This document shows, in pieces, positions 14,263 to 64,000 of a stretch of DNA of 64,000 nucleotides; the first letter of the stretch is position 1, and each line of letters starts with the position of its first letter. Below the pieces are notes generated by a model. The model worked only from the letters and a program-made list of their open reading frames with translations. It ran no database searches and was not told where the DNA came from. Source of the DNA: Takakia lepidozioides (Eukaryota; Plantae; Bryophyta); the NCBI GenBank assembly GCA_030704615.1, contig CM060731.1, forward strand, positions 90,768,001 through 90,832,000. Direction: 5' to 3'. A program made the position numbers and the translations under genes.

Positions 14263-14320
14263 GGCAACAACTCCTTTTTGTGGTGTTTGGCGCTTACGAA
14301 TATGCTGGGTGGTTGGACAG

Positions 14321-17300: not shown

Positions 17301-17499
17301 ACCTCACATGCGGCACGGGTAAGCCTTCACGTGCTCAGTTTGTCCCCTGGCCCCATTGCAATTGCATGCCGCAAGCTATTAACTGCCCGCTTTGTTCCTC
17401 AGGTGCTTCAATGTGGGCAGGGACGTTGTCCGACAGGCATGTGTTCGCCTTCGAGCCAGATACTGCCCTCCACAACTCGGAACTTGCAGCGGCTTTGTT
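14321..17499 (+). pseudogene. Family B ParB-MTase gene, 3' exons in an inverted block (14321-14446, 14542-14756, 15840-~16964, ~17054-17318, ~17403-17499)
   Basis: TRWLQIWNG..., LFFRE, RYCKFSLLEKGHL...RDCPWYVDLPP, ACDMILLDIPDG, RSPAFIQTLMETCSDVQGRILDLTCGTG, GASMWAGTLSDRHVFAFEPD; each is homologous to a family A exon. Confidence 0.75.
14861..15810. repeat. Tandem array of about 10 x 95-bp units inside an intron, each with the near-palindrome actggaaattcggcgccattttccagt
   Basis: ggaaatt recurs at about 14896, 14991, 15086, 15179, 15274, 15369, 15464, 15559, 15654, 15749. Confidence 0.92.
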
Positions 17500-17512
17500 A
17501 AGAATGTATCAC

Positions 17513-20429: not shown

Positions 20430-21935
20430 CGATGGAATTCCGGCGCCGGATTTCCATCCTGCAAGTAATTCGGAGCGCAGCAGGATGGATATCCGGCGCC
20501 GAATTTCCATCCGCGGAGGAAGGGCGGCGCTGGAAATTTCCCTCACCCTCACGCAGGTAATTCGGAAGCGCGCGGATGGAAATCCGGCGACGAATTCTCC
20601 AGCCAGGTAGGGCGGCGATGGAAATGGAAATTCCCTCACGCAGGTAATTCGGAAGCGCGCGGATGGAAATCCGGCGACGAATTTCCATCCAGCCAGGTAG
20701 GGCGGCGCTGGAAATTTCCCTCACGCAGGTAATTCGGAAGCGCGCGGATGGAAATCCGGCGCCGAATTTCCATCCAGCCTGGTAGGGCGGCGCTGATGAA
20801 ATTTCCCTCAAGCAGGTAATTCGGAAGCGCTCGGATGGAAATCCGGCGCCGAATTTCCATCCGCGGAGATAGGGCGGCGCGCCGAATTTCCCTCACGCAG
20901 GTAATTCGGAAGCGCGCGGATGGAAATCCGGCGCCGAATTTCCATCAGCCAGGTAGGGCGGCGCTGGAAATTTCCATCACGCAGGTAATTCGGAAGCGCG
21001 CGGATGGAAATCCGGCGCCGAATTTCCATCCAGCCAGGTAGGGCGGCGCTGGAAATTTCCCTCAAGCAGGTAATTCGGAAGCGCTCGGATGGAAATCCGG
21101 CGCCGAATTTCCATCCGCGGAGGTAGGGCGGCGCGCCGAATTTCCCTCACGCAGGTAATTCGGCACCGAATTTCCATCATGCAGGTAATTCGAATACCGG
21201 AAGAATGGAAATTCGGCGCCGAATTTCCATCCTGCAGGTAATCGAATACCGGATGAATGGAAATTCGGCGCCGAATTTCCATCCAGCAGGTAAGTCGGAT
21301 CGGTGCCGTATGGATATTCGGCGCCGAATTTCCATTCGCCAAGTATTCTGAGCGAGGAATTACCTTCGTGCAGGTAATTCCCAGATGAGAATTACATTCC
21401 TGCAGGTAATTCGTCGATCAGAATTACCTTCGTGCAGGTAATTCTGGACGAGGAATTAACATCCTACCGGCATCGATTGGAATTACCTGCAGGAAGGTAA
21501 TTCTCATCTGGAAATTACCTGCACGAAGGTAATTCTTATCTGGGAATTACCTGCAGGAAGGTAATTCTGAGCGATGAAATACATGGCGAATGGAAATTCG
21601 GCGCCGAATATCCATACGCCACCGATCCGACTTACCTGCTGGATGGAAATTCGGCGCCGAATTTCCATTTATCCGGGATTCCACTTACTTGCTGGATGGA
21701 AATTCGGCGCCGAATTTCCATTCATCCGGGATTCGAATTACCTGCAGCATGGAAATTCGGCGCCGAATCTCCATCCATCCGAGATTCCACTTACCTGCTG
21801 GATGGAAATTCGACGCCGAATTTCCATTCATCCGGTATTCCACTTACCTGCAGGATGGAAATTCGGCGCCGAATCTCCATCCATCCGGGATTCCACTTAC
21901 CTGCTGGATGGAAATTCGGCGCCGAATTTCCATCC
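20430..21935. repeat. Two oppositely oriented arrays of the palindrome GGAAATTCGGCGCCGAATTTCC around an aattacct/aggtaatt-rich centre, between the divergent genes
   Basis: Perfect copy at 21259-21280; about 21255-21341 is the reverse complement of about 21584-21670. Confidence 0.9.
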
Positions 21936-22599
21936 GGGGATGGTCTCTGTCGGAGAGGTGCCGCCTCTCCGCCGCTCTGTTGGATATTCGGTGCCGAATT
22001 TCCGTCCCGGGGGTTGAAATATGACGGCCAGGTGCCGACCTCTCCCTTCTCCCCGACTGCATTGGAACGGCCCCGAATTGAAATTCGGCGCCGTTTTCCC
22101 ATCTGGGGAGGTTTTTATGTCGGCCAGTTTTCGGTCTGACCCCCCGACAAGACTTCCTTTGAGGGGGCCCGGATGGAAATTCGGCGCCGAATCTCCATCC
22201 AGGGGATGTTCTCTGTCGCACACTCACCGGCCTCTGCGCCCGAGGCGACTTCATCCGGGCTTCCTCTGTTGGATATTGGGTGCCGAATTTCCATTCGGGG
22301 GGGGTAGTAATGTGACGGCACGGTGCCGGCTTCTCCCCTTCAGCCGTCATCATCCGGACGGCCCCCCACTTTCTGACTGCATACCGTTGGCAGTTATTGC
22401 GCAAAGACCAGGGCCGCATTCCGGAGACAAGGTTCATTAACACTCTGACTGTGGATTTTTGAGATAGTTGGCTCCCTGGATTTGGATCAGGCTTCGTCGC
22501 TCGGACAAATCGGCATCGCATTCATTCCCATCGCTGCACCCCCTTCTACCAGGGAGCTTCCCCGCACGCCATCTTGGCAGTCTTGTGTGCACATCTCCC

Positions 22600-25500
22600 A
22601 TGGCGGAAAACCCGAGCGCTACAGTGTACTGCCTTCCTCACGAGCATAGAGCTTCATTTCCGTGCAGAGAGGACACCTGCCGGGTGATGGAGAAATATCT
22701 GTGCGTTCGATACCACCTGAAACCGGGGTCGGTTTTTTTGGAGGAGGAAAGGAAGGACTCAAACGGCCTTGTTGTCGAGAGTATTGTTGTGCTCCACGAT
22801 GATTTCGGCGATGGCAGGGAATGGCGAGTTCCACCATCGGACAGCGTCATATACAGGGCTGTTGGGGACTTCATTTGCCCGCCAAATGCACCGTCTATCC
22901 TGGCGCCTTCCACGAAACAATCCGCGAATCAGAGAGTGGGTACCTCAAAGAGAGAAGTCTGCAACGAAGTAAATCCAGAGCCGAACCCATCCATGAAGAC
23001 GACCGAGAACCGGGTTGTTCACAACCTGTCCGACTCAGACGAGGTCATCGAAGTTCCGAGGTCGTCCTGGAGATCAGGCAAGTCCTCAATGGACGTCAGT
23101 GGAGGAGGGAGTCATATTCCCAGCACGAGCACCGCAGTTCGATCTATTCTAGAAATTCTGCGAGGGCTTCACCTGGAAGGACACCGGTCGGAGCTGGCCG
23201 GGCTGGACTACAGCAAGTTCGCAATTAAATCGGTTACATGCCTTCCCGCCGACGTCGACGGTAATATCTTCTTTGAGTTCCCTCCTCGGGCGGACTACTC
23301 GAGGGCGTCCGGAATGTTGACAGATATGGATAGAAAACATGACGGTCATCCTTGGTGCGTTACCAAAACCACCAGCACGAAGATGCTTGATGGTGTGCGG
23401 GTGCGCTACGTTGTTTGAGCGAGCGCGTTGCGGTGTTTCTCCCCAACTTGCTTCCACTTTCAATCCAGAGGTCACAGGAACGAGACCGATTGGACAGGCA
23501 CAGCTCACCAACCATTTCGAGCTCAGGAGAAGGTTCCGAACTCCACATTTAAGTGTGCGCATTGCAAAGAACCACCACACTGCATGTCTGTTTGTAATGC
23601 CAAGCAGTTCTATGTGTTGCACCGTTTCCTTGACCTCACCCGAGCTTGCATACACGTTGGTTCCCATTGTCACAAATTGGCAAGGGGGAACTCGCGGGAG
23701 GCTGCCCACGAAGCAGAGCAGCTCGTTCAGGAGGAGGTTAAGTTGAGACCGGGTGCCAAACCCAAACAGATACAGCTCCAAGCCGCCCATAAGATGGCAT
23801 TGGCCAGAATTATGTCGGAAGACGGCTCCGATAGAGTTCTTCTCGACGAGAAGGAAATGGAGGCATTGCTGGAGTCGGTGTCCCACGTATGTTCACCGAA
23901 TGTCCGAAACCACATTGTCTCATGCAAACAGAAAATTGGGCGTGGCTCGGATATGCACTCCATTCTGGAGGTGAAGCGACGATGTGGATATGACTACATT
24001 CATGGAAGTAGGTTTCCAGGACAAGGGACTGAGGTAGATCGTTGTTTCGTATTCAAAATGTCCACGTGTGGACCTAGCAGTGGCGTCGAACTGGTCGACA
24101 GGATGACGAGTGGGAACTTGTCAAACAGTTGGGTCATGTTCGACCATATCAAGCGAATTACAAATCACCAGTGGGTGACAATGGGTGCACATGTCTACGA
24201 CACCCACTGCAGGATGCTAATGACAATTGCTATTTGTGAGATGAAAGGAGAGGACACACAATCGGAGATGCTTCTTTGGCAGGGAATAAACAAACAGATG
24301 GCCAAGGCGGGATTGCCCCCTCCCAATTTCCGTGGTTTCATGGCGGACAACGCACAAGCAAATTGGGCTGCCATCCAAAGGGTGTACGGGCAAGACCCCA
24401 ATGTTCCCATGGAAGGCAAGGAGAGATCTTGTGGGTTCCATTTTCTGCAGAGCCTTTCGCAGTACACAACCAGGCTCGTGGCGCCAGATTTCAGAGAGGA
24501 GCACCGTTCCATGTGCTTTGCGTGGAAGCGCGCTCCCACCTTGGATGATGCAGAGACACAGTTTGCATGCATACGGGCTTGGTGGACATCGTCAGGTGCT
24601 GTAAGGAAATCAGACGAAGGAGCAATGGTCAGTTGGCTAGCATGGTGGCATTATCGTTTCCTCCAGTTCGGCGACTATATGCGGGAGGTGAGTTGCACGA
24701 ATTCGCGTCCCGTTGGATATTATTCTTGGCCATATTTGTAACTTGCTTGTAACCTGAACATGTGCTTGTGCAGGAAATGTGTCTCGACTCCGACACCGAC
24801 ATGCCCACGACAAACATGGCCGAATCAGTGCACTCTTCCTGGCGTGCCTCCTCTGCGGCGCATCTGGTGGACATCCTCACTGCCACAACGGAGGACATTG
24901 TGAGGTCAATTATGCAGCAATGCAGGTACAACGAGTTCTTGAAAGGGAAACAGTGGGGCTTGGGGCCGGACAGGCGGGAAATGCTGATGCGGACTGCCTC
25001 CAGATCGAAGAATCCTCGGAAGTGGGCGGCGGCCTTGCGAGAGGGCCTTCGGGACACGCCATTGCTGCGAAGAGGCCAACATTTGGAAGGAGATGTTCAT
25101 ACCCGTCCAGTGAGACGAAGACTTGACGAGGCACCTGGCGGAGAAGAGGATTCATGGCGAGCTGACAAGAATATTCGCACGCTCCCTCGTGGTCCGGTGA
25201 TGTTGTCCGAGGAGGTCTCGTCGAGCACCGGAAGTCCTGCACGTTCAAGATCGCCATCTCCTTTGAGCACAGGGCGCGTGCCCCGGCAACATAACGAGCC
25301 ATCTGTAGTAAAGCAATACAACATTCCCATTGTGGAGACAAGAGTGTCGGAGTCACAGTGGAGAATTGCGAGGACATTGCCGGCATTTCGAGGGAAGTGT
25401 TGCGCCATCCGGGTGGATACGAGAGCACGCTGTGGTGAGATGATTCGGAGGAACCCACACGGTGCTGTACCTGCACCTTGTTTCAGCGGCAGATTTTTGA

Positions 25501-26192
25501 CTCCCACATTTGCTCACGCCACAACGCAGACATTTTGGTTCTGTAGGCACGACATAATGACCTGTGTATTTGGCAACCCCAAGTACGGGATTCAGGGAAT
25601 GCCGGAGCCTCCGGGCGTCTGGCCTGTTGCACCGGGTTGCAGCCTCTCTCAGAATGAGGCGGATGCTCTATCTGCAGCAGGATTTCGAATGGTGCAACGC
25701 ACAGACATCCCGGCCCACGCATTTCCGGTTCCTCAGACCCAGCCATTGCAAACTGCTCGGTCCAGTAGAGACGGATTGGACAATTCTGCACATCCCACAA
25801 TGCGATTCGGAAGAGTGAAGAGACGACACCCTCCCAACAAGTTGAATGAGACTCGGATTGCCAATGCTCTTGGGATGGCTTGCACTATTCAGAGCTCCGT
25901 GGACGTACCCCCACCCGGCCTTGGGCGTGTGTATCGGATGGCAACGGCCGGCTCGGCTGTACGCGACGATGTATACACAATTACGATTGGAGTGGAGCCG
26001 ACTTGCAACTGTACGGACTTCTCGTTGATGGAAGCAAAGAAGGGTTCGAAGTATTATCCGTGCAAGCATCTGTATTACATTTACCTGAAGAGGTTGAGGA
26101 TGAACGTGACTATTGATGACTTTATTCATGCACCGGCGTTGAGCGTGAACGAGCTGCACAAACTCCTCCTTAGGGATTCCAGAAATCATTGA
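22600..26192 (+). pseudogene. Mutator-like DDE transposase with C-terminal SWIM zinc finger, family B (stop/frameshift near 23418; intron about 24688-24773)
   Basis: VMFDHIKR (D1), GFMADNAQAN (D2), CGFH (CxxH), TNMAESVH (E), SWIM CNC...CKH. Confidence 0.8.
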
Positions 26193-26339: not shown

Positions 26340-26943
26340 GGGGCCATTTCTGGAAAAATGGCGCCGAATTTCTCTTGTTGGGGCCGAAAACTCGCTAAGT
26401 CCCAACATGCACTGGTACCGTGTCTGGAAAAATGGTGCCGAATTTCTCTTTTTTGGGCCGAAAACTGGCTAAGTCCCAACATGCACTGGTACAGTGTCTG
26501 GAAAAATGGCGCCGAATTTCCCTATTTTGCGCCGAAAACTGGCTAAGTCCGAACATGCACTGGAAAAATGGCGCCGAATTACCTGTCATGAGGGGACCTA
26601 TAGCCGCGGAATTCGGCACCATTTTTCGCCAGAGAGACCTATTGCCGCGAAATACGTCGCCGTTACGGACCCTATTACCGCGAAATTCGGCGCCATATTT
26701 GCACATGTCGCTGGGAATTGGCATGAGCGGAAGACGAAATATCATGAGCACAACTGTCAAAAGTGCAATTTTCCCTTCAAGGGGCCGAATAATATATTTG
26801 TTTTTCCTGACACATTGCATTAAATTATTGTTTTTTTTTGTTTTTTATTTTCGAAATTTGTACTTCTGCTCATGAAAACCGATTGTGTTACTACTCTGCT
26901 CATGCCGCTCATGCCGCTCATGCTCATGAAATAGCAAACCTCC
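26340..26943. repeat. Family B right subterminal region: palindrome variants and gctcatg repeats
   Basis: ggaaaaatggYgccgaattt several times at 26352-26580; gctcatgccgctcatgccgctcatgctcatg near 26900. Confidence 0.8.
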
Positions 26944-29041
26944 AAAGGCTTGACCAACTTGTTCGGGTGAGAGGGATGGGGTCTCAACCACAAGTGTTCA
27001 CGAATGACATTGAGTTCCATATCCTTCCTAGATGTGGCTATGTCCTTCTCCCCAAGAATGGTTCTCAGCACAATCTCACACAAATTTTTTTCACAATGCA
27101 TCACATCCAGTGTGTATCGGATGAGTAAGTCTTTCCAGTATGGCAATTGGTTCAAAACAGTGACCCGTTTCATGCCATGTTCCTTTGAAGGGTCCAGTTT
27201 TCCCCCCTCAGCCCCTCCCATTGCGAGATACAACTCTCTGGTTGTAGCCCGGTCAAATTGCTCACTTGTAGTGACCACCATAGGAGCTGCTCTATGTTCC
27301 ACATGTCCATTAAAATGGGACGAGTTATTCCTATAGGGATGAATAGCAGGCAAGTATCTCCTATGACCAAGATACAAAACTTTTTTGCATGCCTTGGAGT
27401 ACCTGGAATCAACATTAGGGCCGCAAGCTGGGCAGGCCTTGTATCCCCCGTGTGCGCATCCTGCTAGCAACCCATAAGCTGGAAAGTAGTGGATTGACCA
27501 CATCAAGATGGCCCTCATGCAAAATGACTGCTGCCCCACTAGGCTACTTCCATCCAATGCCTCCACACCAACTTCCCACAACAATTTCAGCTCATCCACA
27601 AGGGGCTGCAGATAAACATCTGCATTGTCATTTCCCACAGATTGTGGTCCAGGAATCAATAAAGCCAACATCGTGAAAAATGGCTTAGTACACAGCCATG
27701 GTGGAAGATTATAGTTTACCAACATGACAGGCCAAGTTGACCATTTGTTTGATTTATCACTGTAAGGATTGACACCATCCCATGCGAGACCCAATCGCAG
27801 ATTTCTGGGGTCCGCTGCAAACTCAGGCCATTTTTGGTCAATGTGGGCCCAAGCCTTGCTGTCTGCTGGGTGCCTAACCAAGCCATCCAAACTTCGATTC
27901 TTAAAGTGCCATGACAATAACTCTGAGATGGATTTGGCTTTATACATTCAAAGCAGCCTTGGAATGATAGGGAAATGTCGAAGGACCTTACGAGGTACTG
28001 GTGTCTTCGTACCCACCACATAACGACATGCCTGACATTTTGGACAAACCTCCAGATTTTGAAGCTCCCTTCTGAACAACACACAACCTTTTGGACATGC
28101 ATGTATACTCTCGTAATGAAGCCCGAGTTCCATTATGAGTTGTTTTGCCTCATAGTGGGACTTTGGCAGGCAATTGTCTGCTGGCAACAGTTGTCTTCCT
28201 AACAATGTAAGGAGTTCATCGACAAAGGTGTTTGACACACCATGGGTTTGACAAGCATTTAACAGCAGTAAGGTAGCAGACAATCGAGAGAAGAACTCCC
28301 TACATACAAAGCCCTGGATGCCTCCTGCTCAAAACGTAAGGCACTCGCTGCACCACGATCACCATCGCTCTTCAGTCCACCATCAGTCTGCTCTGGCACT
28401 CCATCTGTGTCCCATTGGCCCTGTGTTCCATCTCCCGGTTCCTCATGTGCATCACCAGTTTGCACCCCATTATCTGTAGTTGCGAATGTCTCCCGGAGCA
28501 TTCTAAGCATGTCAAGATTACGATCCAAGGTATCAGGACCACCTGCAGGGCTGGTTTCCGTTCTAAACCCCTCATGTTCGTCTCCAGAGTTTTCCTGCTT
28601 ATAAGCATATCAGTCCACATGTCAATCCACAATAAGATGGGGAGTTTAGGGTTGGAAATGGTGGATGTGGAACGTGCCATAATACAGGCACGTGGCAATA
28701 GGAAAACGGGCATGTACAATACTCTACACCTTACAACAATCCCGCTACCAGGAATTTGAACTGTTTCTTATAATTTCAAAGTATGCATCAGGGTTAAGGG
28801 AAGAGAATCCACAGATATGCACCGGGAGTTCTCGCAAGTTAGGATCTCGCAAGTTCAAAAGCAGATGACGCTTAGCCCGGCCAATGGTTTGCCAGTTCCC
28901 ACCATGACAGGCATTGCATGGACATAGAATTTTCCGAAGACCCAGTCTTCTTGCTCGCGCTTCCTCTAGTTTCCACAATCTGTCATCGTCATGTTCTGCT
29001 TGTGTCCGCCTTTGCAATCGATGGGCAGTAGGAGGGATCAT
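26944..29041 (-). pseudogene. CACTA-2 transposase, 5' part (transposase-associated domain plus Tnp2/Transposase_21-like)
   Basis: ILCPCNAC; IHACPKGCVLF...CPKC; RHFPIIPRL; LGLAWDGVNP; STWPV...YNLPPWLC; GYKACPAC; LDVMHCEKN. Confidence 0.92.
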
Positions 29042-44708: not shown

Positions 44709-45251
44709 ATTGTGGCATAGCTTTCTAGGATTGTGTGCTTAGAATGTATGGTGGACAACGATGTATGTTGTGGGACGATGCTTAGGTGCACGACAGCTGT
44801 CATGGTTTTAGTCATGGTTAAATAGAATTACCTACTTCTAGTTAACTAGGACATTTTGGATATTTATATTTGTGTTTTGTGTGTTGGGACTTCATTTGGT
44901 CTCACATGCCAAGTGAGGTGTCAAACCTCACTTGGGACATGGGGATGGGTTTTCCCCTTGTGAGTGTTGAGGAGGGCTCATCTTCTTGTAGTTGAGCCTC
45001 CATGAGCCTTTCCCACCTCCATAGCTCTAGGTATTGAGAGGGAGTGTGGTGAGGGCTTTGTAGGGTGGATTCCTTTAGCAAAGGTGCCCTTGGCTTGACT
45101 TAGTTTATGTGATTGAGTGGATTCATGAGTGGAGTGTTTCCATTGTGTGTTCACTTCCATTATCATTGTGGCATAGCTTTCTAGGATTGTGTGCTTAGAA
45201 TGTATGGTGGACAGCGATGTATGTTGTGGCACGATGCTTAGGTGCACGACA
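44709..45251 (+). repeat. Right terminal repeats B1 (44709-44795), gc, A2 (44798-45165), B2 (45165-45251)
   Basis: The 87-bp attgtggcatagc...gtgcacgaca unit occurs on both sides of A2. Confidence 0.9.
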
Positions 45252-50810: not shown

Positions 50811-52497
50811 CGGGCCAAAAAACCCTATGTTGTCTCTCCCGCTGTCAGAATCACGAGATGTGCTTCTGAGCTCGCGGCGAGAGTGTTACGGCGGACGTGC
50901 TTTGGTGGATGCCCCTTTTGTGGTGTCGTATCCTTGCTGGGCGAGCCCCTGGGGATGCGCGAAGGCGGCGCCTTGTCTCTCTAGCAGCGGGAAACACTGC
51001 TGTGAATGCAGTGGCATCTTCCCTCCTCTGGCTTCTAATTTTAGCAGTGGCATTTATGCTGGGAAGTCTCTCTCCCTCCCTTCTATTGCCTTGCGAGTTT
51101 GCCTGCTTTGCTTCATTGCTCATGTGCTTTGTGGAGGCGACTTGCCGCGGGTGGTGATGGCGCATAACCCTCTTCCCCAATCGCTTAAGGTGCCTTTGGA
51201 GTTTAGGGATCATTGTGTTCTTATCTTCTTCTCTTGCTTTTGAGATTCTTAGTTGACATCGATGACAAGTGTGAGGGTTTGTGATTCACCTGGGGTTCCA
51301 CAATCCTCACTAATCTGTTGATTTTGTGGGGGCTTGTGATGGGACCAGGTGAGGATCCTCACTTACTTTGAAATTTCTTGAGCATACAGTTGGGGATATG
51401 GGCTGAGAAGACCTGTAAGTTATCGCGCCTTGACGTGGTTGCTGTTTGCAGCCCCGAATTCAACCCGACTGCTCCTGGTTTGGCAGGCTACAACCTATGT
51501 TTTGGCTTTTGTTGTTCTGCCGTCGATGGGGCAGATCGACCTGTATGGCCTGTCTCCTGAGGCCTGCATACAGACCATACCCTATCTTTTGATCATTGAC
51601 AGCAGGGCCTGTGGATTATCGAGCTAGGTTGTAACTTCTTTGGGCCATAGAGGATCTGGTTTTATGGGGGCTACCTCGGTGGTTTGGGACTCTAAGGACG
51701 TGGTGGCCTTGAATGTTATGGCGGCAGCCTGATAAGGCACCGACCTGCTCCTTTTCGGGCCTGTTTATGGTGTGTGATGGATCATAGTGAGGTGTGCTTT
51801 GCAGGGATGCCTCGGCGTGAGCCTGGTCACGTGAGCGCGTGAGCGCGACTGCGCTCACGCCACGTCACCTTGCGCAAATGCCACGTCACGGGTCTCAGTC
51901 CACGTCATCACACGTGGAGGCCGAGTCACCACGCACCCAGAAAGAAGTGGAGTGTATTCCCGCGGATTGGCACCCTTTACCGCGGAAACAAGCTGGACGA
52001 CATAATAAAAGGCATTGAATAAATGATGGATGAATGTACAGTTGGATGATAAACAGATGGATGAGTTTGAAAAATCTATGTAGATGGATGAATGACGGAT
52101 GGATAAGAGTAAAATGGATGAATGTATAATGGATATTGAGCAATGACAAAAATTCATGACAGGAAGATGCATGACCAAATCTTTTGACGAATGCACAAAG
52201 TATATGAAATGAGTGTGGAAGGTTTGTGGGGTGGATTAAAGAGTACAGAGGATGAATGTACAATGGATGTTGTACAAAGGAAGCTTTCATGAATGGAGCA
52301 CGCATGAATACGGTGTAGATGAATGCACAATGGATATGAGAAGAGTCAGGAAGGTTTGTGAGATGGATTCATACATATAGCAATGTAAACGAAAGTTGAT
52401 TCTGTGATTATTATTTGTTCTAAAGGAACAACTACGGTAGAGTAAGGGGATTCAACGTTTCCAGATAATATGAAAATGAATATTAAAAGAATACAGT

Positions 52498-55400
52498 TCA
52501 GTCTGACTCAGAGTCAGTACAATGTATCCCCTCTTCCTCTGCATCTAAGTCTAAGTATTTTAGAACACCGGATCCACGCGGAATACACCTACGACTGGCC
52601 ACTAAAAAGTCAGGGGATAGGGACTCGGACGCGTGAAGTGCCATTGCTTCGGCATAAACAGGGAGCAGAAAATTGGAAAGGGGGCTGTCGAAAACAGACT
52701 CGCCAGAAATGACTGTATCTCCTGAAGATCCACCGCTGGCTTTCCTGAAAGACAGCCTGAAAAAGTTATTACTGTAACTTTGATGTTATCGAGAAATTGA
52801 GTATGACTCCCAAAGAGGGTTTAGCACTTACTCACATGAAAAGTCGTTGTCGACCTGCTTATCTTCGGGATCGTCATCATTTCGAATATGAATCCGATCA
52901 GTCTGTGTGCCTGAAGTGGAGCCAGACAAAAGGGGGAGGAGCACTGTGTTGTAGAGGTCAGAATCACCCTCCATACCAAAAAGGCTTCTTCCGCCTGCCT
53001 TGCATGCGTGGTAAGTTGCTCCTGCACCAGACAGGAGAACATAAACAGTTTGGAGGAGGGGATTTAAGCAGATGAAACTGTTGAAAGGAAACCAATTCGG
53101 AAGGGAGAAAACGAACCTGTGGACACAGAAAGATCGACAACCCGTGCAGAGCGGTGGCTGCATGACTCCAGCAGTATTTGCATGAATGCTGGTGACTTTT
53201 CCTTTGCACCTCTCCAGGGAGTGCCATCTGGTCTCTTCAGAGTCTGACTGGACTGTATGAAGTTGTACAAAATGTCATCGACATGGGGCTTATAGGGGGG
53301 GTTGACGAAACAACCCTGGTCAGAAATCTCAAAGCTGCGGATGGAGGATGGTGTCTTTGATGTGCGAATCCTCCGCAGGCAGATCGCCTCGAACATCCTC
53401 GTCTGCCAAAGATAGCAGGTTAGTGTGGTAAACACAATCTAAAGTGGAAGTGTGTACATCGGCTATTCAGAACTCTGACACCAAAAAACCATGAATCGTT
53501 GATGATCGGTGTCGATCATAAAACATTCTACTAGAGTGGATCTGCAGAGAAAATTGAAACTCATGATCAAAGCATAAGCAGAAGGCAGACGGCATACCAG
53601 CTGACCAGGGAAACCGCCTTTCACAAGGTAGAGGCTGTTCACACAATTCCATGTGCGCAAAACTTCAAACCCTGAAGACTTGAGGTATGATGCCAATGCC
53701 CGACGACTATCATTGTCACATGACTGAAAAAGCAGAAGTGTCCCTGCATCAGAGAGGAAATTATTACAGAACCCGAATACCCAACTCCAGTAGTTGTCCT
53801 CGAATTTGTTCCACCCTGGCGTCTTGCCCTTTGGAAGAACTTCTGGCACAGCCTGGCCATCCGGGATGTCGAGAATGACAATGTCGGCCGCATAAGTTTT
53901 CTGCACACCGCACACGAAGGTGGGACCTGTGCTCACCTGCAACAGACATGTTTTTTATAAGAACGATGGCAAGAATGTTTTCAAAGAACGAGACTGAAAT
54001 ACTGCCAACGAAACATTCAGAGAAAAGGAAAGAAAATGGAATTCTCACCAGATTGAGGAATGAGATTATATTGTCCCAGGTAGGGGATGGCACCCCAGTG
54101 TATCCTCTCTTTCGACTCTGCATCATCGAAAGCCAACCCTCATTAACAATTTTCATCTCTCCTGCTGAATCAGAACGGGAAGGGTGTGGCTTGGCATCGA
54201 ACACGCACTGAAGAGTGCGGGTATATCTTCCAGCAGTAAAGTCCTGCCCACTCTCCATCTCCTTTTCATTCTCCTTCCCCTTGTCCTTTTCCTTCTCTTT
54301 GGACTTGTCTTTGTCCTTTGGCTTTGCTGGTGAGATGGCTATGACATCAACAGCCTTGTCTTTTGGTTTGCGGCCCGCCTTCTTTCCCTTCTGCGGCGTT
54401 CCCTGAGCATCAGGCTCCTTGGCAGCCAAGGTTGCTATGTTTCGTTGATACTCTTCGTCAGTCAAAGGCGCCAGCATCTCAGCGTTATTGTTCAAGTATT
54501 TCATATGCTGTTCTTGAAAGGTCGTGTGCTCAGGTGGGCAGTCAAGGTACCACCCACAGTCTCTGAAGTGAGAAGGACTCCAGTCCTTCAATATCCCTGC
54601 AGTATACATGGTTGGATCGTTTGCAGGGTCCGACCACATGTCAAGATAGTCGGGAATTCCGCTCAGGTGATTTCCTTCCATAAGCACATATTTCGTGTAC
54701 CTGAAAAAAGGAGATGAATCCCAACCCACAAAAGCGCTCAGTGAGTAAGATGCAAGTAGAACAGAAAGAATAAAACATGGATTGAAATGGCTCTGACAAC
54801 TGCTCCAAGGACCTTTCAGGACCACACTACTGCTCCAGATATGAATGTCGTCAACGCCATTCAGAACATTCCATTCCATGACACTGTAAATACATCCTAA
54901 TCCAGGTGAATGCAAATAAGCGATTAGAAATGACACAGACATAGAAGTGAATGTCGTCAACGACATTCAAGAATGAAGCCAAATTATTACTGAAATGAAG
55001 CAAAAGCACAGGATGGAAATAAAAAAATTGTGTAAGGAACCATCCAGGAAAACTCAATGCACATTCATAACGAACCTATCACTGAGGACCTCACAACATC
55101 ATTGTATGTGAATGGCGTCAACGCCATTCACAAAAATACAAAAAAGAAACCAATTACTTAGCTCCCCAATCCATGAAAATTGAATTTGTCGTTTTTGAAT
55201 AATACAGACACAGCTGTGAATGTCGTCAACGACATTCACTTTGGATTTCTTAAAACAGAGCTTATCAAGCCTCCATATTCATCGCAAGAGGAGAAAACAA
55301 TGCAGAACAACTGAATGTCTGCATTGACATTCAGCAAAATGAAGTGATCAACCCTCATTGTAACCTCTATGGACATTACAAAAATTTAAATAACCTTGAG

Positions 55401-58134
55401 GACCACACAACAACTCCGTATGTGAATGTCGTCAACGCCATTCAAGGACATTATCAATTCTAATCAGGGACAATATAATTGCACCCTTAGATCCTAACCA
55501 GGTGAATTCATATACTCGCTTAAGAATGACTCAGACAAAGAAGTGAATGTCGTCAACGACATTCAATCTGGATCTAAGATTGCAATCCATATGAAGCCAC
55601 AATTTTTCCCAAAAAAACAGTAGAGTTTCAAGTATGACATTTCACCTGTACACAACTCGCATCATGGCCCACTCTCCTCCAACCTGACTGTCAAAGTCGT
55701 TGGACCGTAAAATGTTACCATCTTTGGAGAACTCCCGGAAAAAACAGTATCTCCAGGTGAGACCTCTCCACTTCCTTATGTATGCCTCCAATGACATTTG
55801 GGGAGGGGAAACAATCGCAATGTTCAGGTCCTTCAAAGTCTGATCCAGCACAATGACGGCGCGCTTTTCGAGCTGCAAATAGTATATTTGTCAGAATTGC
55901 AAAAAAGAAACACATCACATACTTGAAGAGAAGAAACAGCATGTTCGAATACACACCTGACTCCAAAATGTAGCCTTGTGGAGCCAGTTATCAAACACCA
56001 AATCACTGATTCCTTCCACCTTTGTGCCAGGCTGTATGGTGCTCTTTGGGAACTGATTCAAGTCCTTTACTGTTTGATCTGAGTTCCATATCTCCAGCCA
56101 CCTTATTTTTGTTTGTGGGTCGACCATCGATATGGCCAGCCGGTGCAATTTCTCCTGCTGCATCTCCGGATGCACATGCTTGTCATAGTGTGTTTTGATC
56201 TGCTGAAGGAACTCAGGACCAAGTCCAGGATCTACTATTCTAAGCTGCTTTCTGAAGGCTGACATCAATTTGGTTCTTCGCATCTCAAACTCCTTCTTTA
56301 TTGCAGCTTCCACACCCTTTGATGTCATTAGTTCCTCTGGTGTAGTGCGGTAATATTCGGATTTTCCCTTCTCAGCTGCCTCTGCCAGTTCTTGCTGCAT
56401 TCATTCAAGTAGTGATTAGCTCCGAAGGGACTCTAAACATGTATTCGAAAAGTAAACAGATTACAGACTCGGGCTTATCGCATACATGTACTCCAGAAAC
56501 GCCTCTCGTGTCAAAGAATACCAAGTGCCTGCAGCTCTTCCTGTTTCGCACTTCTTGATGATATTGGGTGGTAGTACTGTCCGAAAATCATCCAGCTTCA
56601 TCAGACCAATCCTCTGAATTCGGAATAGTGTGTGAACCAAGCTTGTTGTCACATGCGATTTCTCTGTCGATCTGCAAAAACATTGAAAACATTGCATTCC
56701 TTAACACTGTTTTTTGAGGATCAACAAGACACTACAGAGGGAATCAAATCTCCTGGATGACTTACTTGTTCACGTCGTGCATAGCTGTAAGAAGCCTAGC
56801 GATGTCGTTTCCTGGATCCAAAACCATTGCCTCCACAGCAACATGCTTGTCTTTGTCTTTCGAATGGTGTTTCTGAATGTATCCCATCCATGCCAGCAAT
56901 CGGTGGTTGCCGTCCCAGACGTAGAACATGTGGTTGCAAAATTGCTGGGTGTTCTTTCCCATCATGAGGCCCAGCTCGAACTCCTCATTGGCATCTTTCC
57001 AGCACTCATCCCAGTTATCACTGATCTCTGGAGAAACTAATGTGCTTTTCCCATTTATATCCGTCAGGGACACATAAAAAACTTGTGCACCAAGTCTATA
57101 TCCATGCACAAAATCACTCTCCAATTTTGTTATGTCATGGGAAAGAGGTGGACGCACAACAGGCATTGATATCATCCGGCACAGAGGTATGTCCAGACGC
57201 CCTCCAGATACGAGCATGTCCCTTATAACCTCCTGAGAGTTTACCTTCTGGAATGACATGAGTTCTTTCACCTTGTCAAGGTAGTGCACTTCGGATTCAT
57301 CTGCTTCATCTGTATTCTCTGAGCTTTTTGCGGACTCGTCCCCATCTCCAGATCCTTTCCCCTCTGATCCTGTAGGCTTCGACCTCACAGTTTTCTGCAC
57401 GATGCCATTCAGTTCTGACTAAGTCATTTGCAAATAGTGAATGGCGGTAACGACAATCACTCTGTATCAAGGAAACTCACCATGAATGGTGTGAAAGAAT
57501 TCAGCACAATCTACAGATGCAAAGCCGAGACTGCCGTATTCAAAACAAAAGTGAGAGCGATAGCGAACGGCGTTAACGACAATCACAAAAGATAACAACC
57601 TGCCGGATCGGTGTTGTGAAATGACATATATGTGCAACTGATTGGCGGCAACGACATTCAGTATAGTTTAGGGAGAATAGTAAGTGCAGACTCTCTCTTC
57701 AAACACATAGGTACATAAATCTCATGAGCAGAATCGAATGGCGTTAATGACGCTCGCGATTCAGTAGTTCCTGCTAAAGAATGGAAGAGGAAGGACTCCT
57801 TGAAAGGCAATCACATAGACTATATGATAAAACTTACTGGCACCTTCTTAGGTTTTGAACTTTGATCCCCTTCTGCAGCTTTCCTCTTCCCTCTCACATC
57901 TGCTGGAGTTTCTGTCTGCGCAAGGGTTTCTTGACCTTCTTCAGGTTCGGCGTTCCGCGTGCTTCCACCTTCTTCAGTGTCCCTGCGATTCATCTCTGCC
58001 TCCACAGGCTGGCGCACTCTTATCGCCGGCTGTGTCGCAGCCGCTGCCTCAGTCTCCGTCTGCTCTTGTGAATCAGTCTCCGCGTTCACCTGCTGCCTTG
58101 GCCCTGTGTTCTCCAACAAACGACGCCTCGTCAT
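52498..58134 (-). CDS. Predicted ParB/Srx-like domain - beta-class N4/N6 DNA methyltransferase fusion (about 10 exons; one donor site near 56478 appears mutated)
   Basis: VWDGNHRLLAW (about 56900); intron 55645-54701 joins VVY-R-YTKY in frame; ADIVILDIPDG; EKSPAFMQILLESCSHRSARVVDLSVSTG; GATYHACKAGGRSLFGMEGD. Confidence 0.72.
54842..55565. repeat. Seven intronic copies of the 22-bp palindrome TGAATGTCGT-CA-ACGACATTCA
   Basis: Starts at 54842, 54948, 55109, 55217, 55312, 55423 and 55544; another copy at 7955. Confidence 0.9.
57438..57756. repeat. Four degenerate copies of the same palindrome in intron 1
   Basis: Starts at 57438, 57564, 57639 and 57735. Confidence 0.7.
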
Positions 58135-58989
58135 TTTCTCTCTTGCTCTGCGTCTCTCTCTAAGGGAAGTAAAATAAAGAGACTTTCTTCTCTTTCGTAT
58201 TCTAGAAGGAACCCTCTCCAGCTTGACTACCACTCTCCCTCTAAGCGCGAAAAGTAGAAAAACGCAGTGACTCCCGATTTCTTGCGGGATTGCCTGTGTT
58301 CTTGCGTGTCTCTAGAAGCATCGGATTCCCTCCCGCGTGACCGTTACACATAGTCGTTTCGATATTAGTGCACATGCCAGCAATTGGTGTACAGCTGTTC
58401 GTATTCAGTTATGGATGTCTGACGTGTGCCGCCCAAAACAAAACGGCGTGTTCTAAATTATAACTGGTTCAATATTTAAAAAGAACAGCGAATCCCAGAA
58501 ATTGATGCGCAGTCTTAAACAAATAAATATAAATGAACGAGAGTTTGATGACAAATTTTGGAATATCATACACGGTCATCCTTGTTATCCAAACCCCACA
58601 TTCGTTGCACATTTGGAACTTTCCAGGTGCGCATGATCATTGGTAGTAGTATATAGATACATTTACTTAATCTGCAATCCCATTCTCGGATCCTGTGGCA
58701 TGCTTCCAGGAAGTCGGCTTTGTTATTGGGTTTATTGATGAGGTTCTGATTAACGGTTTAACAGTTGCCGACACTGCCCCTATGGATTCTCTGACCACTG
58801 GGCCCACAAGAAAAGTAATTAAAATGGACGGCTGCATATCTGGAATGAATAACAGAATATGCACAGTCGTTATCTGAGCTTCCTCCGCCATATGCTCTGC
58901 TCATTCTTCAACTGTGTTCTGGAGACAGCAGTAAACCGATTTACACTAGATCTGCGATAGCAAGGTACAAACATACTCGAGGAAGGAAG

Positions 58990-61900
58990 ATGGCTTCCTC
59001 TGAAGCGGAGTTCTTCTCAGACGACAAACCAGTGCCGTTCTCCCAGGAAGTCCTTGACAATGGATTTGCAATTGTTCTGGAACATGTCTTGGCTACCCGT
59101 TTTCAGCTGCAGAATGGCTCCATCTTTTTGGAGAAAGAGGTTTACGATCTGAAAGGAAGAAGTTGGTGAAATATTCTTTCCAAAACCGTGATGAGACGGC
59201 TCATATCAGCCAGTGGAGAGTGCGTCCTGGTCGATACAGAGTACTTGGAGAGCCTCGGCGAAAGTCCCTTGGGTCATATGTGACGCCCGGGACTGCTGCT
59301 TCGGTCGTTGAAGACAAGAGGGAGGTGGTGGTGAAAAAAGAACAGACGTCCTCCACTCCAATCGTTGAGCTTTCGGATTCATCCGATGATGACATAAGTG
59401 AAATTCCAAATCCAGTCCTTCCTACTGTGGTTGCAGAAGCTGATGAAGAAGAGATTTGTAGTGTCATTCCAAAATTGCGGGCGATGAGAGGAATGGCTGG
59501 ATTCAAAAGCGAGTTGCGGGGAATTGATTGGGAATCTTTGAAGCAGGTGCCTGTGAAGTTCTTGCCGGAGACTTTTGATGGCGATATCCTATTCGAGCTG
59601 CCTCCTCCTCCGCGAGTTGGAGGTGTAACAATCATGATGCATGGAATGGACAAGAAACACGACGGGCACCCGTGGTGCAGAACAAAAACATCCAATATTC
59701 AGAATGATGACAAGCTTGTTTTCAGGAGGACAGTTTGCAATGGACACCTTAGGTGTGATAATTTGAATTGCAGACACTTTCTTCAGTCTGGAGTTCATAA
59801 TCAAAGCGAATGGGAGGGTCTGGCAGAGAATCCATTTCAGCCTGGGACTGCCCCTCCACCGGCAAACACTTTCGTCTGCAAATTCTGCAAACTTGTGCCA
59901 TCCTGCTTGGCGCTCTGCGGAGCAAGAATGTACTATGTTGTCCACCGTTTGAATACAATGACGAGAGCTTGTGTGCATTTTGGATTCCATAACCATCCTG
60001 TCTCGAAGGGGGATTACAGGGAGAGTGTTGAGACAGTATCGAGGTTGATCAAACAGGAGTTCGGGAGAAACCCATCCGCAACAACATCTGCAATTGCTCT
60101 TGGCGCAAGCAAGTCCTTCTTGGAAAGCCATATTTTGAGTGAAGGAGATTCTGTGGGGACTAAACTTGACGGTGCAGCATTGGACCTGGTCATGGATCAT
60201 TTCTCCACTTTAAGTTCACCTAACATTCGGCATCAGATCAATGCATTGAGAATGGGCTCTGGGATCAGAGGCTACATAGACAATATTTTGGAATTGAAAC
60301 GACTGAGCAAGTACGATTACATCCAGGACAATGTATTCCCAGGTCAAGGTGCCATCAAAGTTTTTCTTTTCAAAATGTCGACTGTTGGGGAGGGCAGTGG
60401 GGTTAGCCTCGTGAAGCGGATGCAGAAGACTGGGGACTTGCAGAACTGTTTTCTTATGTTTGATCATGTGAAACGAGTGAAGGATTGGACGACGAATGGC
60501 TTGTCATGTCTACGATCCAGTGTACCAACGAGTTATGACAATTGCAGTTTGTGACATGCAATCCGAGGATACGGAATCCCAGAAGCTCATGTGGAATTCC
60601 CTGATACGTGTCATGGGCTGCCATCTCCAAATTTCGCAGGTTTCATGGCGGATAGTGCTCAAGCAAATTTCAATGCTATTCGTATTGTCTTCGGATCGGG
60701 CGACCCAAAAGTGCTTATGCCAGGAAGAGAGCGTACATGTCTATTCCATTGGACACAATCTCTGGAAAAACATACAAAGTCGGACATCAAACCAGAGATG
60801 CAGACTCAGCACCGTAAATTGTGCAAAGAGTACAAAGATGCTAGAACAATGAAGGAGGCGGACACTTTGTTCCAGACAATTCGTGCCTGGTGGTTCTCTT
60901 CTGGAGCTGCATCACTTGAGAGTATGAGAGCATTGGAAGATTGGCTGGCGTTTTGGCACTTCCGGTATAGACAGTGGGGAGCAGCCATGACAATGGTACG
61001 AGGCTTCTATTTCATGCTTTATTCATACATTTGCTTTCCATATTTTTGTTGCTTTCTTTATGTTGTTTCCTGTGCACTATTCTGAAGTGTGGTTATCCTC
61101 TTTGCAGAACATGTCCATTGAGGAAATGGCAGACATGCCATCTTGCAATTTGGCAGAAACTGTGCACAATGCATGGTTGCAGCAGTCTGGGAAAAGAGGT
61201 CGGGATTTGTATGTGGCAACAACAGATGATTTGATACGTGCCTTGCAACAACAAACCCGATACCGTGATTTCTTACGAGGTGGGGTTGGTGGCAAGGGTC
61301 CGGACAAATCGGAGTTGATGTTGCGTGCTACAAACAGATCTGGGGATCCAATCAAGATAGCACGGGCGGTGAGCATGTATGCCCAGGGAACGCCACTTGT
61401 TTCTAGAGTTCCACATCTTGAAGGGAGGAGAGATTCGGCTCCTGTAAGAGGAAATTGAACACTCCACCTGGTTCGGATTCAGATTCCCACAGGGCAGACC
61501 GTGATAACTTCTCGAAGCCTCGTGTTCCCCTGCATGACAGCTCCGTGTCCGGAACCTCCATTGTGGAGGAACCTCCAACACGACGGCAAGCTCCAGCATC
61601 AAACCGTGCCACTGAAATGGTGCAGGAGAGAAACAACCCCCTTGATGTGCTTGAGTCCGCATGCCCCGACCACGTTTGGCACATAGAACGCACAAGTGTC
61701 GGGTCTCGTGTGAAATGTACAGCGATCAGGGCAACTAATTTCGAGAAGTGCACTTCATCTATATCCAGAGGTGGTGCCCGAACTCCTGCTCCGACTTTCA
61801 CGGGCTTGATGCGTCCATACGGTCAACCAGAAGCCAAGAACCACAAGTTCTGGTTCTGCGCAGATGATTGTGCCAGATGTGTGCATGGAACTGTGCGTCC

Positions 61901-62492
61901 TTCCGTAGTGATGAAGCCATCTCCTCCAACCGTTTGGCCCGTGAAGGTGGGAACACATCTCAGCTTTCAGGAGATTGAAATGCTGGAGGAGGCAGGTTTT
62001 TCCCTTGCGAGACAACCCCAACTCCATGCATGTGCTACTACTCCTGCGTCCTCCCGGGTCCCCCCGGCAAATCCTGACTTGTGGCCAACCAAACGAGATG
62101 GAAAGCTCGTTCGGCGTTTCCCTCCAACCGCTGAACACTTTGGCAAAGTGGAGTCCGCAAGAATGCTCCAAGCTCGTGTTGGAAGCACCACGGAAGTACC
62201 CGATCCAGGATATGGTCGGGTATTCACAATCATCACTTCCACATCTGCTGTTCATGACAGGACCTACGACATCACGGTTTCCAATTTCCCCAATTGCACA
62301 TGTCCTGATTTTGTGAATATGCTATCAACCAGTTTGGGCAAGAGAGGTAAATTCATACCCTGCAAACATTTGTATTTCATATTTTTGAGGAGGATGGTTT
62401 GCGATCCCAAACGTGACAACTTCATTCACCAGGCCACTATGAGTTTCAACGAGGTCGATACTCTTTTGCAGCGGGATACAACACATGGGTAG
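58990..62492 (+). pseudogene. Mutator-like DDE transposase with SWIM finger, family A (several frameshifts; intron about 60996-61107)
   Basis: HDGHPWC, FLMFDHVKR, GFMADSAQAN, CLFH, CNLAETVH, SWIM CTC...CKH; homologous throughout to 22600-26192. Confidence 0.82.
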
Positions 62493-64000
62493 CATGAACT
62501 ATGTAATGTGGTATGTGGATGACCATGATTTGAAATGTGTAATTCACATCAATTCGTCGGCTGTGCAATGATATGGCCTCCAACTATACGGAGTGAGGTC
62601 TGAGTGACAACTTTTAGGTAGTGCACATTTGTCATTGCACCGTTCGAAGTCTACATGTCTTGCTGTCGCTATGCACTACAATCATCTTTTGAAGATGATC
62701 ATAACTCTCATTGTTATTTGAGGAGGGAGGAAGTCTTCTCGTGGCAGCCTTTATGGCGCACACTTTGTGAGGATATTTTGTCGTCTTCGTAATTGTAAAA
62801 GTGAAACAAACATTTGTAATTGCACAATGTTGGATGCTGCAATTGTAGGCCTCAACGCTCGTCTTGATTCTATTTAGGCAAGATTCCCTGCATTAATTCC
62901 ACGGTCATAGGACCATCCACGGTTATAGGCGGCGCATGTTAATGCTGACGTGGCAGTTGACGGACAGTGCCACGTCATCATTTACCGCCACATCAGCATG
63001 CTGACATGACGCTCACGCCACGTCAGCATGTGTGCAGGCTCACGCCACGTCAGCTGGCGTGAGCGTACGCTCACGCCACGTCACTCCTGCGTGAGCGTAC
63101 GCTCGCGCGCTCACGTGCAACGCTCACGCCATTGCGTCGTTGCTTTCTTTGCAAGCTTTAGCATGGACCTCTTGAAGGATGAGGATGGTAAGCTGTAATG
63201 GAATCCTACCTATAGTTTTGGCCTTGTCATGACATCAGGCCTATGACCTGCAATCTGAGTTTTTTTATGTGCCAAAGAGGCTGGATCTCGGTTGTTCAAG
63301 TTGCTTGTGCGTACAAGTCTTGAAGTTGCAATTTGACAGGCTGAATTCACATTCCCTTGACACCTTGTATGATTACATGTCGCGGGATGAGTGCAAATGG
63401 TATGGAATCTATTTCATCATGCCCAAGTAGGATTGCTTGGAGACACGTTTTGATTATGAAAAATTGCAGGCTGGTCCTTATGCCTTGGTTGATGCATGAC
63501 CTGCTGTAATGAAAGGCTGATAAGGTAAGATGTTGCAACCTGTGTGTCATGCCCAAGATGTATGTTTGAAAACGTGTCTTGAAATGGTAATAGGGCAGGC
63601 TGGACCATGGTACCTTGCCCTTTGCATGACCTCAGCATTTTGTGCTCCTTCAATACATGACCTTGCTGGTAAGGCATGTGGGCAGGCTGAACCAAGATGC
63701 CTTGCAGCTTGCATATAGGCGACAATATCTTATCTTGTCCCACACAAGAGCAAACCCCGCCCTCCCTGTTTTGTCTTGGATGATTGGGTGGTATCATTTG
63801 GGATGATTTGACAAGAATGGAAGTGTGAGATAGTGCCCTGTCTAGGGCTGTTTATGTCTTTAATGCTAGAGGAAAACTTAAATCTTTCACGGTCTGTAGA
63901 GGTAAATTCCTGGATGACACCTATTGAGACAGACCTTGCACTTCGAATTGGTGACTTAGGCATGGATATTGTGAACTTGGAGGCCAAACTCAAAGAGTTG

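Follow-up and report, generated by a model that had tools for sequence, protein, structure and literature searches.

A Mutator-like transposon lineage of land plants carries a gene joining a ParB-type domain to a noncanonical beta-class methyltransferase-like domain

RESULTS

Two divergent genes in element A

We analyzed a 64,000-nucleotide (nt) stretch of the genome of the bryophyte Takakia lepidozioides (assembly GCA_030704615.1, contig CM060731.1, positions 90,768,001 to 90,832,000 of the forward strand), hereafter called the window and numbered from its first letter. Its subject is element A, a probable Mutator-like element (MULE) in which a transposase gene stands beside a second gene, here termed the cargo gene, whose product joins a ParB-type domain to a methyltransferase (MTase)-like domain. 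This cargo gene is the accessory (second) gene of a Mutator-like transposon lineage of land plants. The window is eukaryotic DNA with a G+C content of 42-54%, and it also holds a partial copy of element A (A2) and a second, diverged family (B). The features of element A are as follows.

51814-63130, no strand: element A (family A), with imperfect terminal inverted repeats (TIRs) at its bounds
59163-62492, plus strand: transposase of A, with a MULE-like core and a C-terminal SWIM-like CxC...CxH, divergent from the cargo gene
57838-58134, minus strand: exon 0 of the cargo gene, a basic low-complexity N-terminus with an open frame and the donor CCA/GTAAGT; the first ATG is taken as the probable start codon
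56766-57394, minus strand: exon 1, a 211-codon exon for the predicted ParB/Srx N-domain, with IPLCRM...VRP (box I-like) and VWDGNHR (box II/P-motif-like)
56671-56469, 56390-55957, and 55872-55646, minus strand: exons 2-4, a conserved middle region of unassigned fold
54701-55645, minus strand: intron 4, 945 nt, phase 2, GT-AG, lying between the ParB and MTase halves and holding the family A palindromes
54842-55565, no strand: six copies of the 22-nt palindrome TGAATGTCGT-CA-ACGACATTCA, inside intron 4
54049-54700, minus strand: exon 5, with a conserved segment and then a low-complexity linker rich in lysine
53900-53598, 53402-53117, and 53021-52828, minus strand: exons 6-8, the beta-class amino-MTase-like domain

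The TIRs are imperfect and about 47 nt long, the left arm (51814-51860) pairing with the reverse complement of 63089-63130. Sub-terminal repeats, GCGTGAGCG and CGCTCACGC, occur at both ends of the element, where GCGTGAGCG units are abundant. No target-site duplication was seen, as no 9-11-mer is common to the sequences flanking the TIRs. The plus-strand transposase gene lies head-to-head with the minus-strand cargo gene; the cargo open reading frame (ORF) is intact and the transposase is broken, with at least three frame breaks relative to that of family B in a tblastx comparison. The SWIM model PF04434 scored 16.9 bits in A and 17.2 bits in B, at a cut-off of 19.6, and the Pfam MULE model PF10551 had no match at E values up to 1 on the transposase ORFs of the window. 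A transposase pattern, FD...MAD...C-x-x-H...E, was seen by eye. For the B transposase, the top ten Atlas neighbours that bear a family were all PF10551 MULE, which we treat as a lead and not as an alignment. By direct comparison, the B transposase is 31% identical (E 3e-54) to the transposase at a locus of the liverwort Riccia sorocarpa (L001).

One spliced product from the cargo gene

The cargo gene of copy A was modelled on the minus strand with nine exons and eight introns, all GT-AG, giving 1,074 codons and no internal stops. Exons 2-4 have collinear tblastn matches in four other loci (L002, L004, L005, and L006), whereas searches of Pfam and PDB gave no match for this middle region. The sequence-only reading from which this work started had placed a phase-2 intron at the same codon between the two halves of the gene in both families, and the sequences confirm it: in family A, the exon end TAC AG, the intron gtgaaa...ttcag, and the next exon, G TAC ACG, give VVY-R-YTK, and in family B, TAC AG, gtacat...tgcag, and G TAC TGT give LLY-R-YCK, at the same codon and in the same phase.

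Logan contigs of four runs from the same organism were compared with positions 52700-57500. An X1 contig skips exactly 54701-55645 at GT-AG on the gene strand, and X1 contigs also skip 53901-54048 (GT-AG) and 53403-53597. The X2 and X3 contigs show no joints in this interval; colinear contigs of both runs are unbroken over the low edge of the 945-base intron (54700/54701), and colinear X2 contigs are unbroken over its high edge (55645/55646). Inside the intron, at 54954-55436, there was no depth in any of the four runs. Separate transcripts for the two halves, named beforehand as the outcome that would speak against a fused gene, did not occur: the X1 contig bridges both halves on one transcript by skipping the joining intron, in a run guessed to be RNA and from a paralogue about 97% identical to copy A. 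The X1 contigs are transcript evidence for the family and no proof that copy A itself is expressed. On this evidence, the cargo gene is shown to give a single spliced protein, about 1,075 residues long.

The copy A model is weakest at the exon 2/3 junction. The paralogue transcript contig begins exon 3 four bases upstream of the modelled acceptor, copy A has no in-frame GT donor that fits this start, and comparison with L006 gave no resolution. Because the X1 contig carries, upstream of exon 3, a loose end of 30 nt that the window lacks, the expressed paralogue differs at exon 2, and the junction in copy A is uncertain for that reason.

A further X1 contig (1,642 nt, depth 468) overlaps the gene only at 54247-54298, 52 nt within the lysine-rich linker of exon 5, and its probable source is an abundant transcript, unrelated to the gene, in which the same simple repeat occurs.

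A predicted ParB-type domain in exon 1

The N-terminal motif VWDGNHR, reported for both families in the sequence-only reading, is present in each, in exons (A, 57394-56766; B, 18663-18205; both minus strand) whose products are 45% identical over 132 amino acids (aa). Relatives of the exon numbered 51 in a word-indexed search and 1,286 representative clusters in a hidden Markov model (HMM) search, and were mostly exon-sized ORFs called on environmental eukaryotic contigs. In an alignment of 31 sequences, IPLCR (71-75), R83, and N165 are invariant and D163, G164, H166, and R167 are at least 90% conserved, which yields a near-invariant DGNHR..AW; the equivalence of these segments to the GERR and IPxxxI..R motifs rests on motif pattern and fold match rather than on residue-level superposition.

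The Pfam model for the ParB N-domain (PF02195) had no match at E values up to 1 on the ParB exon or on the full-length Riccia proteins. Since phmmer and profile searches of the exon against PDB sequences returned chance matches only, a fold search was needed. An AlphaFold2 model of 56762-57400 (minus strand), built with the alignment of relatives, reached a predicted local distance difference test (pLDDT) score of 85. Essentially all of its first 38 Foldseek matches were ParB, Noc, PadC, KorB, Srx, SbnI, or SerK structures, at an E value of only 0.01, and VIA-align superposed it on Caulobacter ParB-CTPgS (7bm8) with Z 9.1 and a root-mean-square deviation of 2.1 Å over 94 aa. More specifically, the Z scores were 7.3-9.1 for ParB clamps and 5-6.3 for Srx/SerK. 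The expected ParB fold was thereby borne out, and the modelled structure together with the motifs shows exon 1 to encode a predicted ParB-CTPase-type nucleotide-binding N-domain with a P-motif arginine (DGNHR).

The nearest Atlas neighbours of the ParB exon were fungal DUF3723 (PF12520) clusters (0.95, 178 shared features), clusters of PF02195 and DUF6551 appearing only from rank 24 down. The relation to DUF3723 had no HMM support, and it is kept as a lead only; if DUF3723 has a ParB-like N-domain, this fungal family would gain a fold assignment.

A permuted beta-class MTase-like domain with an altered catalytic loop

The C-terminal motifs stand in the order that the sequence-only reading had given, IV followed by X/I and II. 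Family A has ILDIPDG, then KSPAF...VVDLSVSTG/ATYHAC...FGMEGD, and family B has LLDIPDG...SPAF...ILDLTCGTG...FAFEPD. In exons 6-8 of A, the segments are a motif IV-like DIPDG, an X-like KSPAFMQILLE, an I-like VVDLSVSTG/AT, and a II-like FGMEGD, and the permuted order IV...X-I-II recurs in A, B, and eight other lineages.

Pfam searches on the separate window exons, PF01555 included, found nothing meaningful, because the introns split the motifs. With the 101-aa motif IV exon as query, a homologue search yielded no candidates, an outcome of its word and length limits that does not speak for absence. In L005, where exons 7 and 8 are contiguous, PF01555 matched at 19.7 bits (8.6e-4; cut-off, 26.7 bits), and the C-termini of the Riccia proteins P0196, P0198, and P0199 scored 23.7-26.2 bits, just below the cut-off of 26.7. 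Four Riccia paralogues carry PF01555 in a precomputed table, and the Atlas neighbours of the Riccia members are phage PF01555 enzymes. A profile that included the window exons matched DpnA/M1.HpyAVI at E 4.8e-8 and CcrM at 1.8e-3; likewise, an HMM restricted to window-type sequences (those of A and B plus five environmental relatives) matched the Riccia PF01555 domains at E 1.6e-13 (Z = 1e6). With a model of Riccia P0199, the first 41 Foldseek matches were all PF01555-type/beta-class amino-MTases (best E 5.5e-10), the named ones being M1.HpyAVI, CcrM, M.BceJIV, RsrI, MboIIA, rotifer N4CMT (8s9m/8s9n), and PvuII. The N6_N4_Mtase fold that had been anticipated was thus found by profile and Foldseek matches via the Riccia relatives. 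By these sequence and model comparisons, the C-terminal 230 residues are shown to form a predicted circularly permuted beta-class (PF01555-type) S-adenosylmethionine (SAM)-methyltransferase domain, an assignment made through profile and fold matches to M1.HpyAVI, CcrM, and RsrI that were reached via liverwort relatives. The earlier designation as a beta-class MTase therefore stands for motif order, homology, and fold, but ILDIPDG is not a canonical motif IV, and methylation is only predicted.

Alignment to CcrM, in part by our own reading, puts the D-x-P-x tetrad on DPPY. The tetrad is DIPD in A, A2, B (16690-16725), and L004, DLPE in L006, and DMPE in L010 and L011; it is DLPT, DLPS, DMPS, or DMPT in Riccia, and DVPF, with an aromatic residue (DVPFG), in the fern locus L007. 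Motif I is DFAGGWG in Riccia and D-L/C/I-x-x-[SGA]-T-G in the window types. Across ten lineages that are 25-45% identical, the D, P, and G of motif IV are kept, as are motifs X, I, and II; the K-x-P motif is conserved, and the motif II glutamate is found in all lineages. From this pattern of conservation, the D-x-P-x-G loop reads as being under constraint. The NPPY found in exon 7 of A was rejected as a candidate for the true motif IV: B has DAAV at this place, other lineages differ as well, and the position misfits the PF01555 motif order.

Such a loop might also belong to a pseudo-enzyme, as METTL14 is an MTase-like pseudo-enzyme. The domain would then bind DNA, and perhaps SAM, without methyl transfer, and the protein, its architecture and self-recognition role being unchanged, would serve as a sequence-specific shield or anti-silencing factor for its own element, like VANC of the Arabidopsis VANDAL MULEs. 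Motif IV, D-[ILMV]-P-[DETSF]-G, has neither the second of the two proline positions nor the aromatic residue, S or A often replaces the first glycine of motif I, most members score below the Pfam gathering cut-off, and inactive MTase domains borne by transposable elements occur in DIRS1 (Iyer et al., PMC4738411). On the other hand, the loop D, P, and G, the motif II glutamate, and K-x-P are conserved over liverwort, fern, and several unplaced lineages, which exceeds what is usual for a decaying active site, and in one fern copy the canonical site does hold an aromatic residue. We consider this explanation rather unlikely.

Family B and the partial copy A2

The remaining copies in the window comprise the following features.

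4859-8003, minus strand: copy A2, a partial, decayed 3' half of family A (exons 5-8 and one palindrome)
17498-19322, minus strand: 5' part of the family B cargo gene (N-terminus, ParB exon, exon 2, and first half of exon 3)
14263-17545, plus strand: 3' part of the family B cargo gene (second half of exon 3 to exon 8), inverted relative to the 5' part
20434-22292, no strand: family B arrays of the palindrome GGAAATTCGGCGCCGAATTTCC, lying between the two genes, with periods of 53 and 85 nt
22468-26192, plus strand: transposase of B, with a SWIM-like C-terminus and an in-frame stop at 23416-23418

A2 is 78-92% identical to A in register and has in-frame stops in exon 6, the motif IV exon. The cargo gene of B is discontinuous, with a breakpoint at one point of exon 3 and its halves on opposite strands: A 56103-55954 matches B 14324-14449 (plus strand), and A 56355-56104 matches B 17761-17510 (minus strand). 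Measured from the middle of exon 3, the plus-strand piece spans 14324-17545. A and B had been described as sharing one architecture; this holds for the divergent transposase and the motifs of the fused gene, but B is rearranged, with its 3' half inverted.

Linkage to the transposase in other lineages

Full-length relatives occur in Riccia sorocarpa (e.g., P0198, 1,207 aa, KAL3677308.1), and shorter gene models were found in the ferns Adiantum nelumboides and A. capillus-veneris. At the Riccia locus of P0198 (L001), the cargo gene (10001-13843, plus strand) is divergent from transposase ORFs (7632-4146, minus strand), and the environmental eukaryotic contigs L002 and L005 have the same divergent two-gene layout, in agreement with the earlier expectation of linkage to this transposase elsewhere. 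L006 carries all cargo exons in order on one strand, and in the Adiantum locus L007 and contigs L010 and L011 the MTase exons lie downstream of the ParB exon. The cargo gene is thus shown to travel head-to-head with the transposase in deeply diverged lineages, and the plant family is widespread, occurring in a liverwort, in ferns, in the Takakia window, and on many environmental eukaryotic contigs.

Several Riccia members (P0196, P0198, P0199, P0212-P0214, and others) are labelled "Trimethylguanosine synthase" in UniRef, and one is labelled "Profilin" or "peroxidase." Liverwort gene models often divide the ParB and MTase parts or join the gene to its neighbours. Public annotation of this family is unreliable, being mis-assigned or absent ("hypothetical protein," "trimethylguanosine synthase," divided models). 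The identity as a trimethylguanosine synthase was rejected, as PF01555 is the sole Pfam match and no cap-methylase family matched.

The UniRef name on some Riccia members is nonetheless one point in favor of an RNA or protein methylase, and the noncanonical motif IV leaves the choice of substrate wide. Against this stand the Pfam searches, which gave PF01555 and no cap-methylase match, and the structural neighbours, which are DNA MTases. A functionless, captured host gene fragment of the Pack-MULE kind is opposed by the intact ORF, the conserved intron positions, and conservation together with the transposase across lineages. We regard these two explanations, taken together, as most improbable.

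Palindrome arrays private to each family

The family A palindrome has 14 strand-matches at ≤3 mismatches in the window, where none is expected; outside the six copies in intron 4, the only others are at 7955 (in A2, at the matching place) and a degenerate one at 57639. The family B palindrome has 24 matches at ≤3 mismatches (none expected), all within B, and intron 4 of B holds a 95-nt array of 10 units (14864-15812) with a variant of it. Within the window, neither palindrome occurs outside its own family, the chance expectation being none. Riccia L001, L002, fern L007, and L010 likewise have palindrome arrays of their own adjoining the ParB gene. Each of these lineages is thereby shown to have arrays of palindromes of its own, 14-30 nt long, which adjoin the gene or lie in the intron that separates its halves.

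A core, TCGGCGCCGA, is common to the arrays of B (20434-22292), L002 (17250-18051), and L010 (1918-2301), the outer arms of which differ; a conserved recognition core combined with lineage-specific specificity positions would be expected to look like this.

The arrays could also point to a role as a transposition or maintenance cofactor, comparable to MURB of MuDR or to plasmid partition, in which the ParB domain would bind the internal palindromes and assemble or tether the transposition complex or the excised element, the MTase domain being secondary. The cargo gene does sit at the second-gene place of a two-gene MULE, the arrays are placed in an intron or in the stretch that separates the two promoters, and ParB proteins act as DNA clamps, with palindromes as their loading sites (PMC12704722). 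However, Pfam and PDB searches found no ParA-like partner, helix-turn-helix (HTH), or dimerization domain, and the retention of a PF01555 domain in every lineage would stay unexplained. We judge a cofactor role of this kind distinctly unlikely.

Other features of the window

A 375-aa ORF (26820-27947, minus strand) directly follows the right end of family B and, judged by eye, resembles the conserved TNP2-type region of plant CACTA/EnSpm transposases. Two 300-nt direct repeats (9507-9806 and 44798-45097) are 98% identical and 35 kb apart, and they may be long terminal repeats (LTRs) or solo LTRs of one retrotransposon family.

DISCUSSION

Proposed function of the cargo protein

The reading that we prefer is that the cargo protein would use its ParB module and middle region to recognize the parS-like palindromes that its own element carries, and that the action of the MTase-like domain would thereby be confined to the element's own DNA, as in phage ParB-methylase and ParB-dioxygenase pairs. 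The domain is predicted to function as a SAM-dependent N-methyltransferase whose catalytic loop (D-x-P-x-G) is altered, and the mark, which might be N6-methyladenine (6mA), N4-methylcytosine (4mC), or similar, could counter host silencing or time transposition. There is precedent for a ParB module directing a DNA-modifying enzyme in the phage ParB-N6_N4 MTase fusions (PMC12704722), and a phage thymine dioxygenase requires a ParB-like activator on double-stranded DNA (PMC13229309).

The fold and homology matches of the two domains, the intact 1,074-codon ORF, the splicing seen in X1, the linkage, the private arrays, and the conserved motifs count for such self-marking, and the arrays in particular give circumstantial support to the idea of self-loading, marking, or shielding. 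The following observations weigh against it. Each of the window copies A and B has damage in one gene or more. That X1 is an RNA run is only a guess; its transcript contigs are 95-97% identical to the window (about 97% for the one that skips intron 4) and thus come from paralogous copies, and one of them still contains the 95-nt intron 7 and lacks 20 nt of exon 7. The MTase fold model is that of Riccia P0199, a liverwort relative and not the window protein, with a pLDDT of 57.7. The canonical tetrad, (D/S/N)PP(Y/F/W/H), is replaced by D-[ILMV]-P-[DETSF], followed by G, in ten lineages; the base-stacking aromatic residue gives way to D, E, T, or S in nine of the ten, and motif I is S/A/G-T-G, not G-x-G, in most window-type copies. 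After the ParB domain, no HTH, other DNA-binding, or C-terminal dimerization domain was matched in Pfam or PDB sequence searches, and support for a dimer is absent, as a two-copy prediction of the ParB N-domain scored 0.00 in a setting without control runs and counts neither way.

On balance, an active methylase that marks its own element appears possible to us, with somewhat less than an even chance. The version in full detail, in which the ParB domain would be a nucleoside triphosphate-gated clamp that loads on the family-private parS-like palindromes and spreads, and in which a noncanonical amino-MTase would mark (with 6mA, 4mC, or a new modification) only the element's own DNA, so that the element escapes silencing or couples transposition to replication, is unlikely to be right in every part.

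The combination of a bacterial-type DNA-clamp module, a bacterial-type DNA-methylase module, and private palindromes makes this family a concrete, testable candidate for transposon-written DNA marks in plants, and it bears on the disputed source of 6mA and 4mC signals in plant genomes. The invariant D-x-P-x-G loop is notable in itself, since it marks either a pseudo-enzyme that has been conserved or a catalytic variant new to the beta-class enzymes.

Comparison with known systems

To our knowledge, very few eukaryotic transposons have proteins that act on their own chromatin, and VANDAL with VANC is the sole demonstrated case. VANC of the Arabidopsis VANDAL elements, which are MULEs, resembles the cargo gene in being a MULE accessory gene, and it is believed to act on short, family-specific motifs that recur within its own family; it is, however, an unrelated protein with neither a ParB nor an MTase fold. 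The anti-silencing function of VANC has been demonstrated experimentally, whereas that of the cargo gene is only predicted.

The N4CMT of bdelloid rotifers, a horizontally acquired PF01555 4mC methyltransferase (PMC8885841), is likewise a bacterial-type beta-class amino-MTase in a eukaryotic genome with a connection to transposons. In contrast to the transposon-borne gene described here, with its noncanonical catalytic motif, N4CMT is a host gene fused to a chromodomain and aids the silencing of transposable elements. TET/JBP dioxygenase genes accompany the KDZ/Plavaka elements of basidiomycetes (Iyer et al. 2014, cited through the Bostrychia preprint), so that these DNA transposons, too, travel with a base-modifying enzyme; in that account, the enzyme and the transposase superfamily are different and no ParB module is mentioned. 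A survey of eukaryotic adenine methylases described ParB-HTH-Dam fusions in chlorophytes and chytrids and did not include the Takakia-type family (PMC4738411).

The red-algal Plavaka, Mutator, Zisupton, and Fanzor elements come closer, in that they carry PAG2 (PF01555 plus SET) and PAG3 (ParB-like plus 2-oxoglutarate [2OG] oxygenase), and tandem inverted-repeat arrays adjoin PAG3; the authors of the 2025 preprint propose that the element's own DNA is bound and modified (bioRxiv 10.1101/2025.02.11.637652). As in the Takakia family, ParB-like and PF01555 modules are transposon cargo and inverted-repeat arrays lie by the ParB gene. Judged by their published description, the PAG genes differ from the family reported here, which has one fused protein with no SET or 2OG domain and land-plant hosts. 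The combination had been thought undescribed in the sequence-only reading: no description of the fused ParB-PF01555 land-plant form was found in the literature searched, but a version in separate genes, the red-algal PAG2/PAG3, is on record (10.1101/2025.02.11.637652).

The nearest counterparts in domain composition are the phage and prophage fusions of a ParB-CTPase with an N6_N4 MTase (PF01555), which have the same domain order, are borne by mobile elements, and carry the P-motif arginine (PMC12704722); the ParB-Tls loci are a further phage/prophage reference (PMC4738411). Unlike these fusions, the gene of the Takakia lineage is eukaryotic, with 8 introns, about 1,075 aa, and a conserved middle of ~500 aa of unassigned fold, its motif IV is D-x-P-x-G rather than DPPY, and it is partnered by a MULE transposase and by palindrome arrays private to the element.

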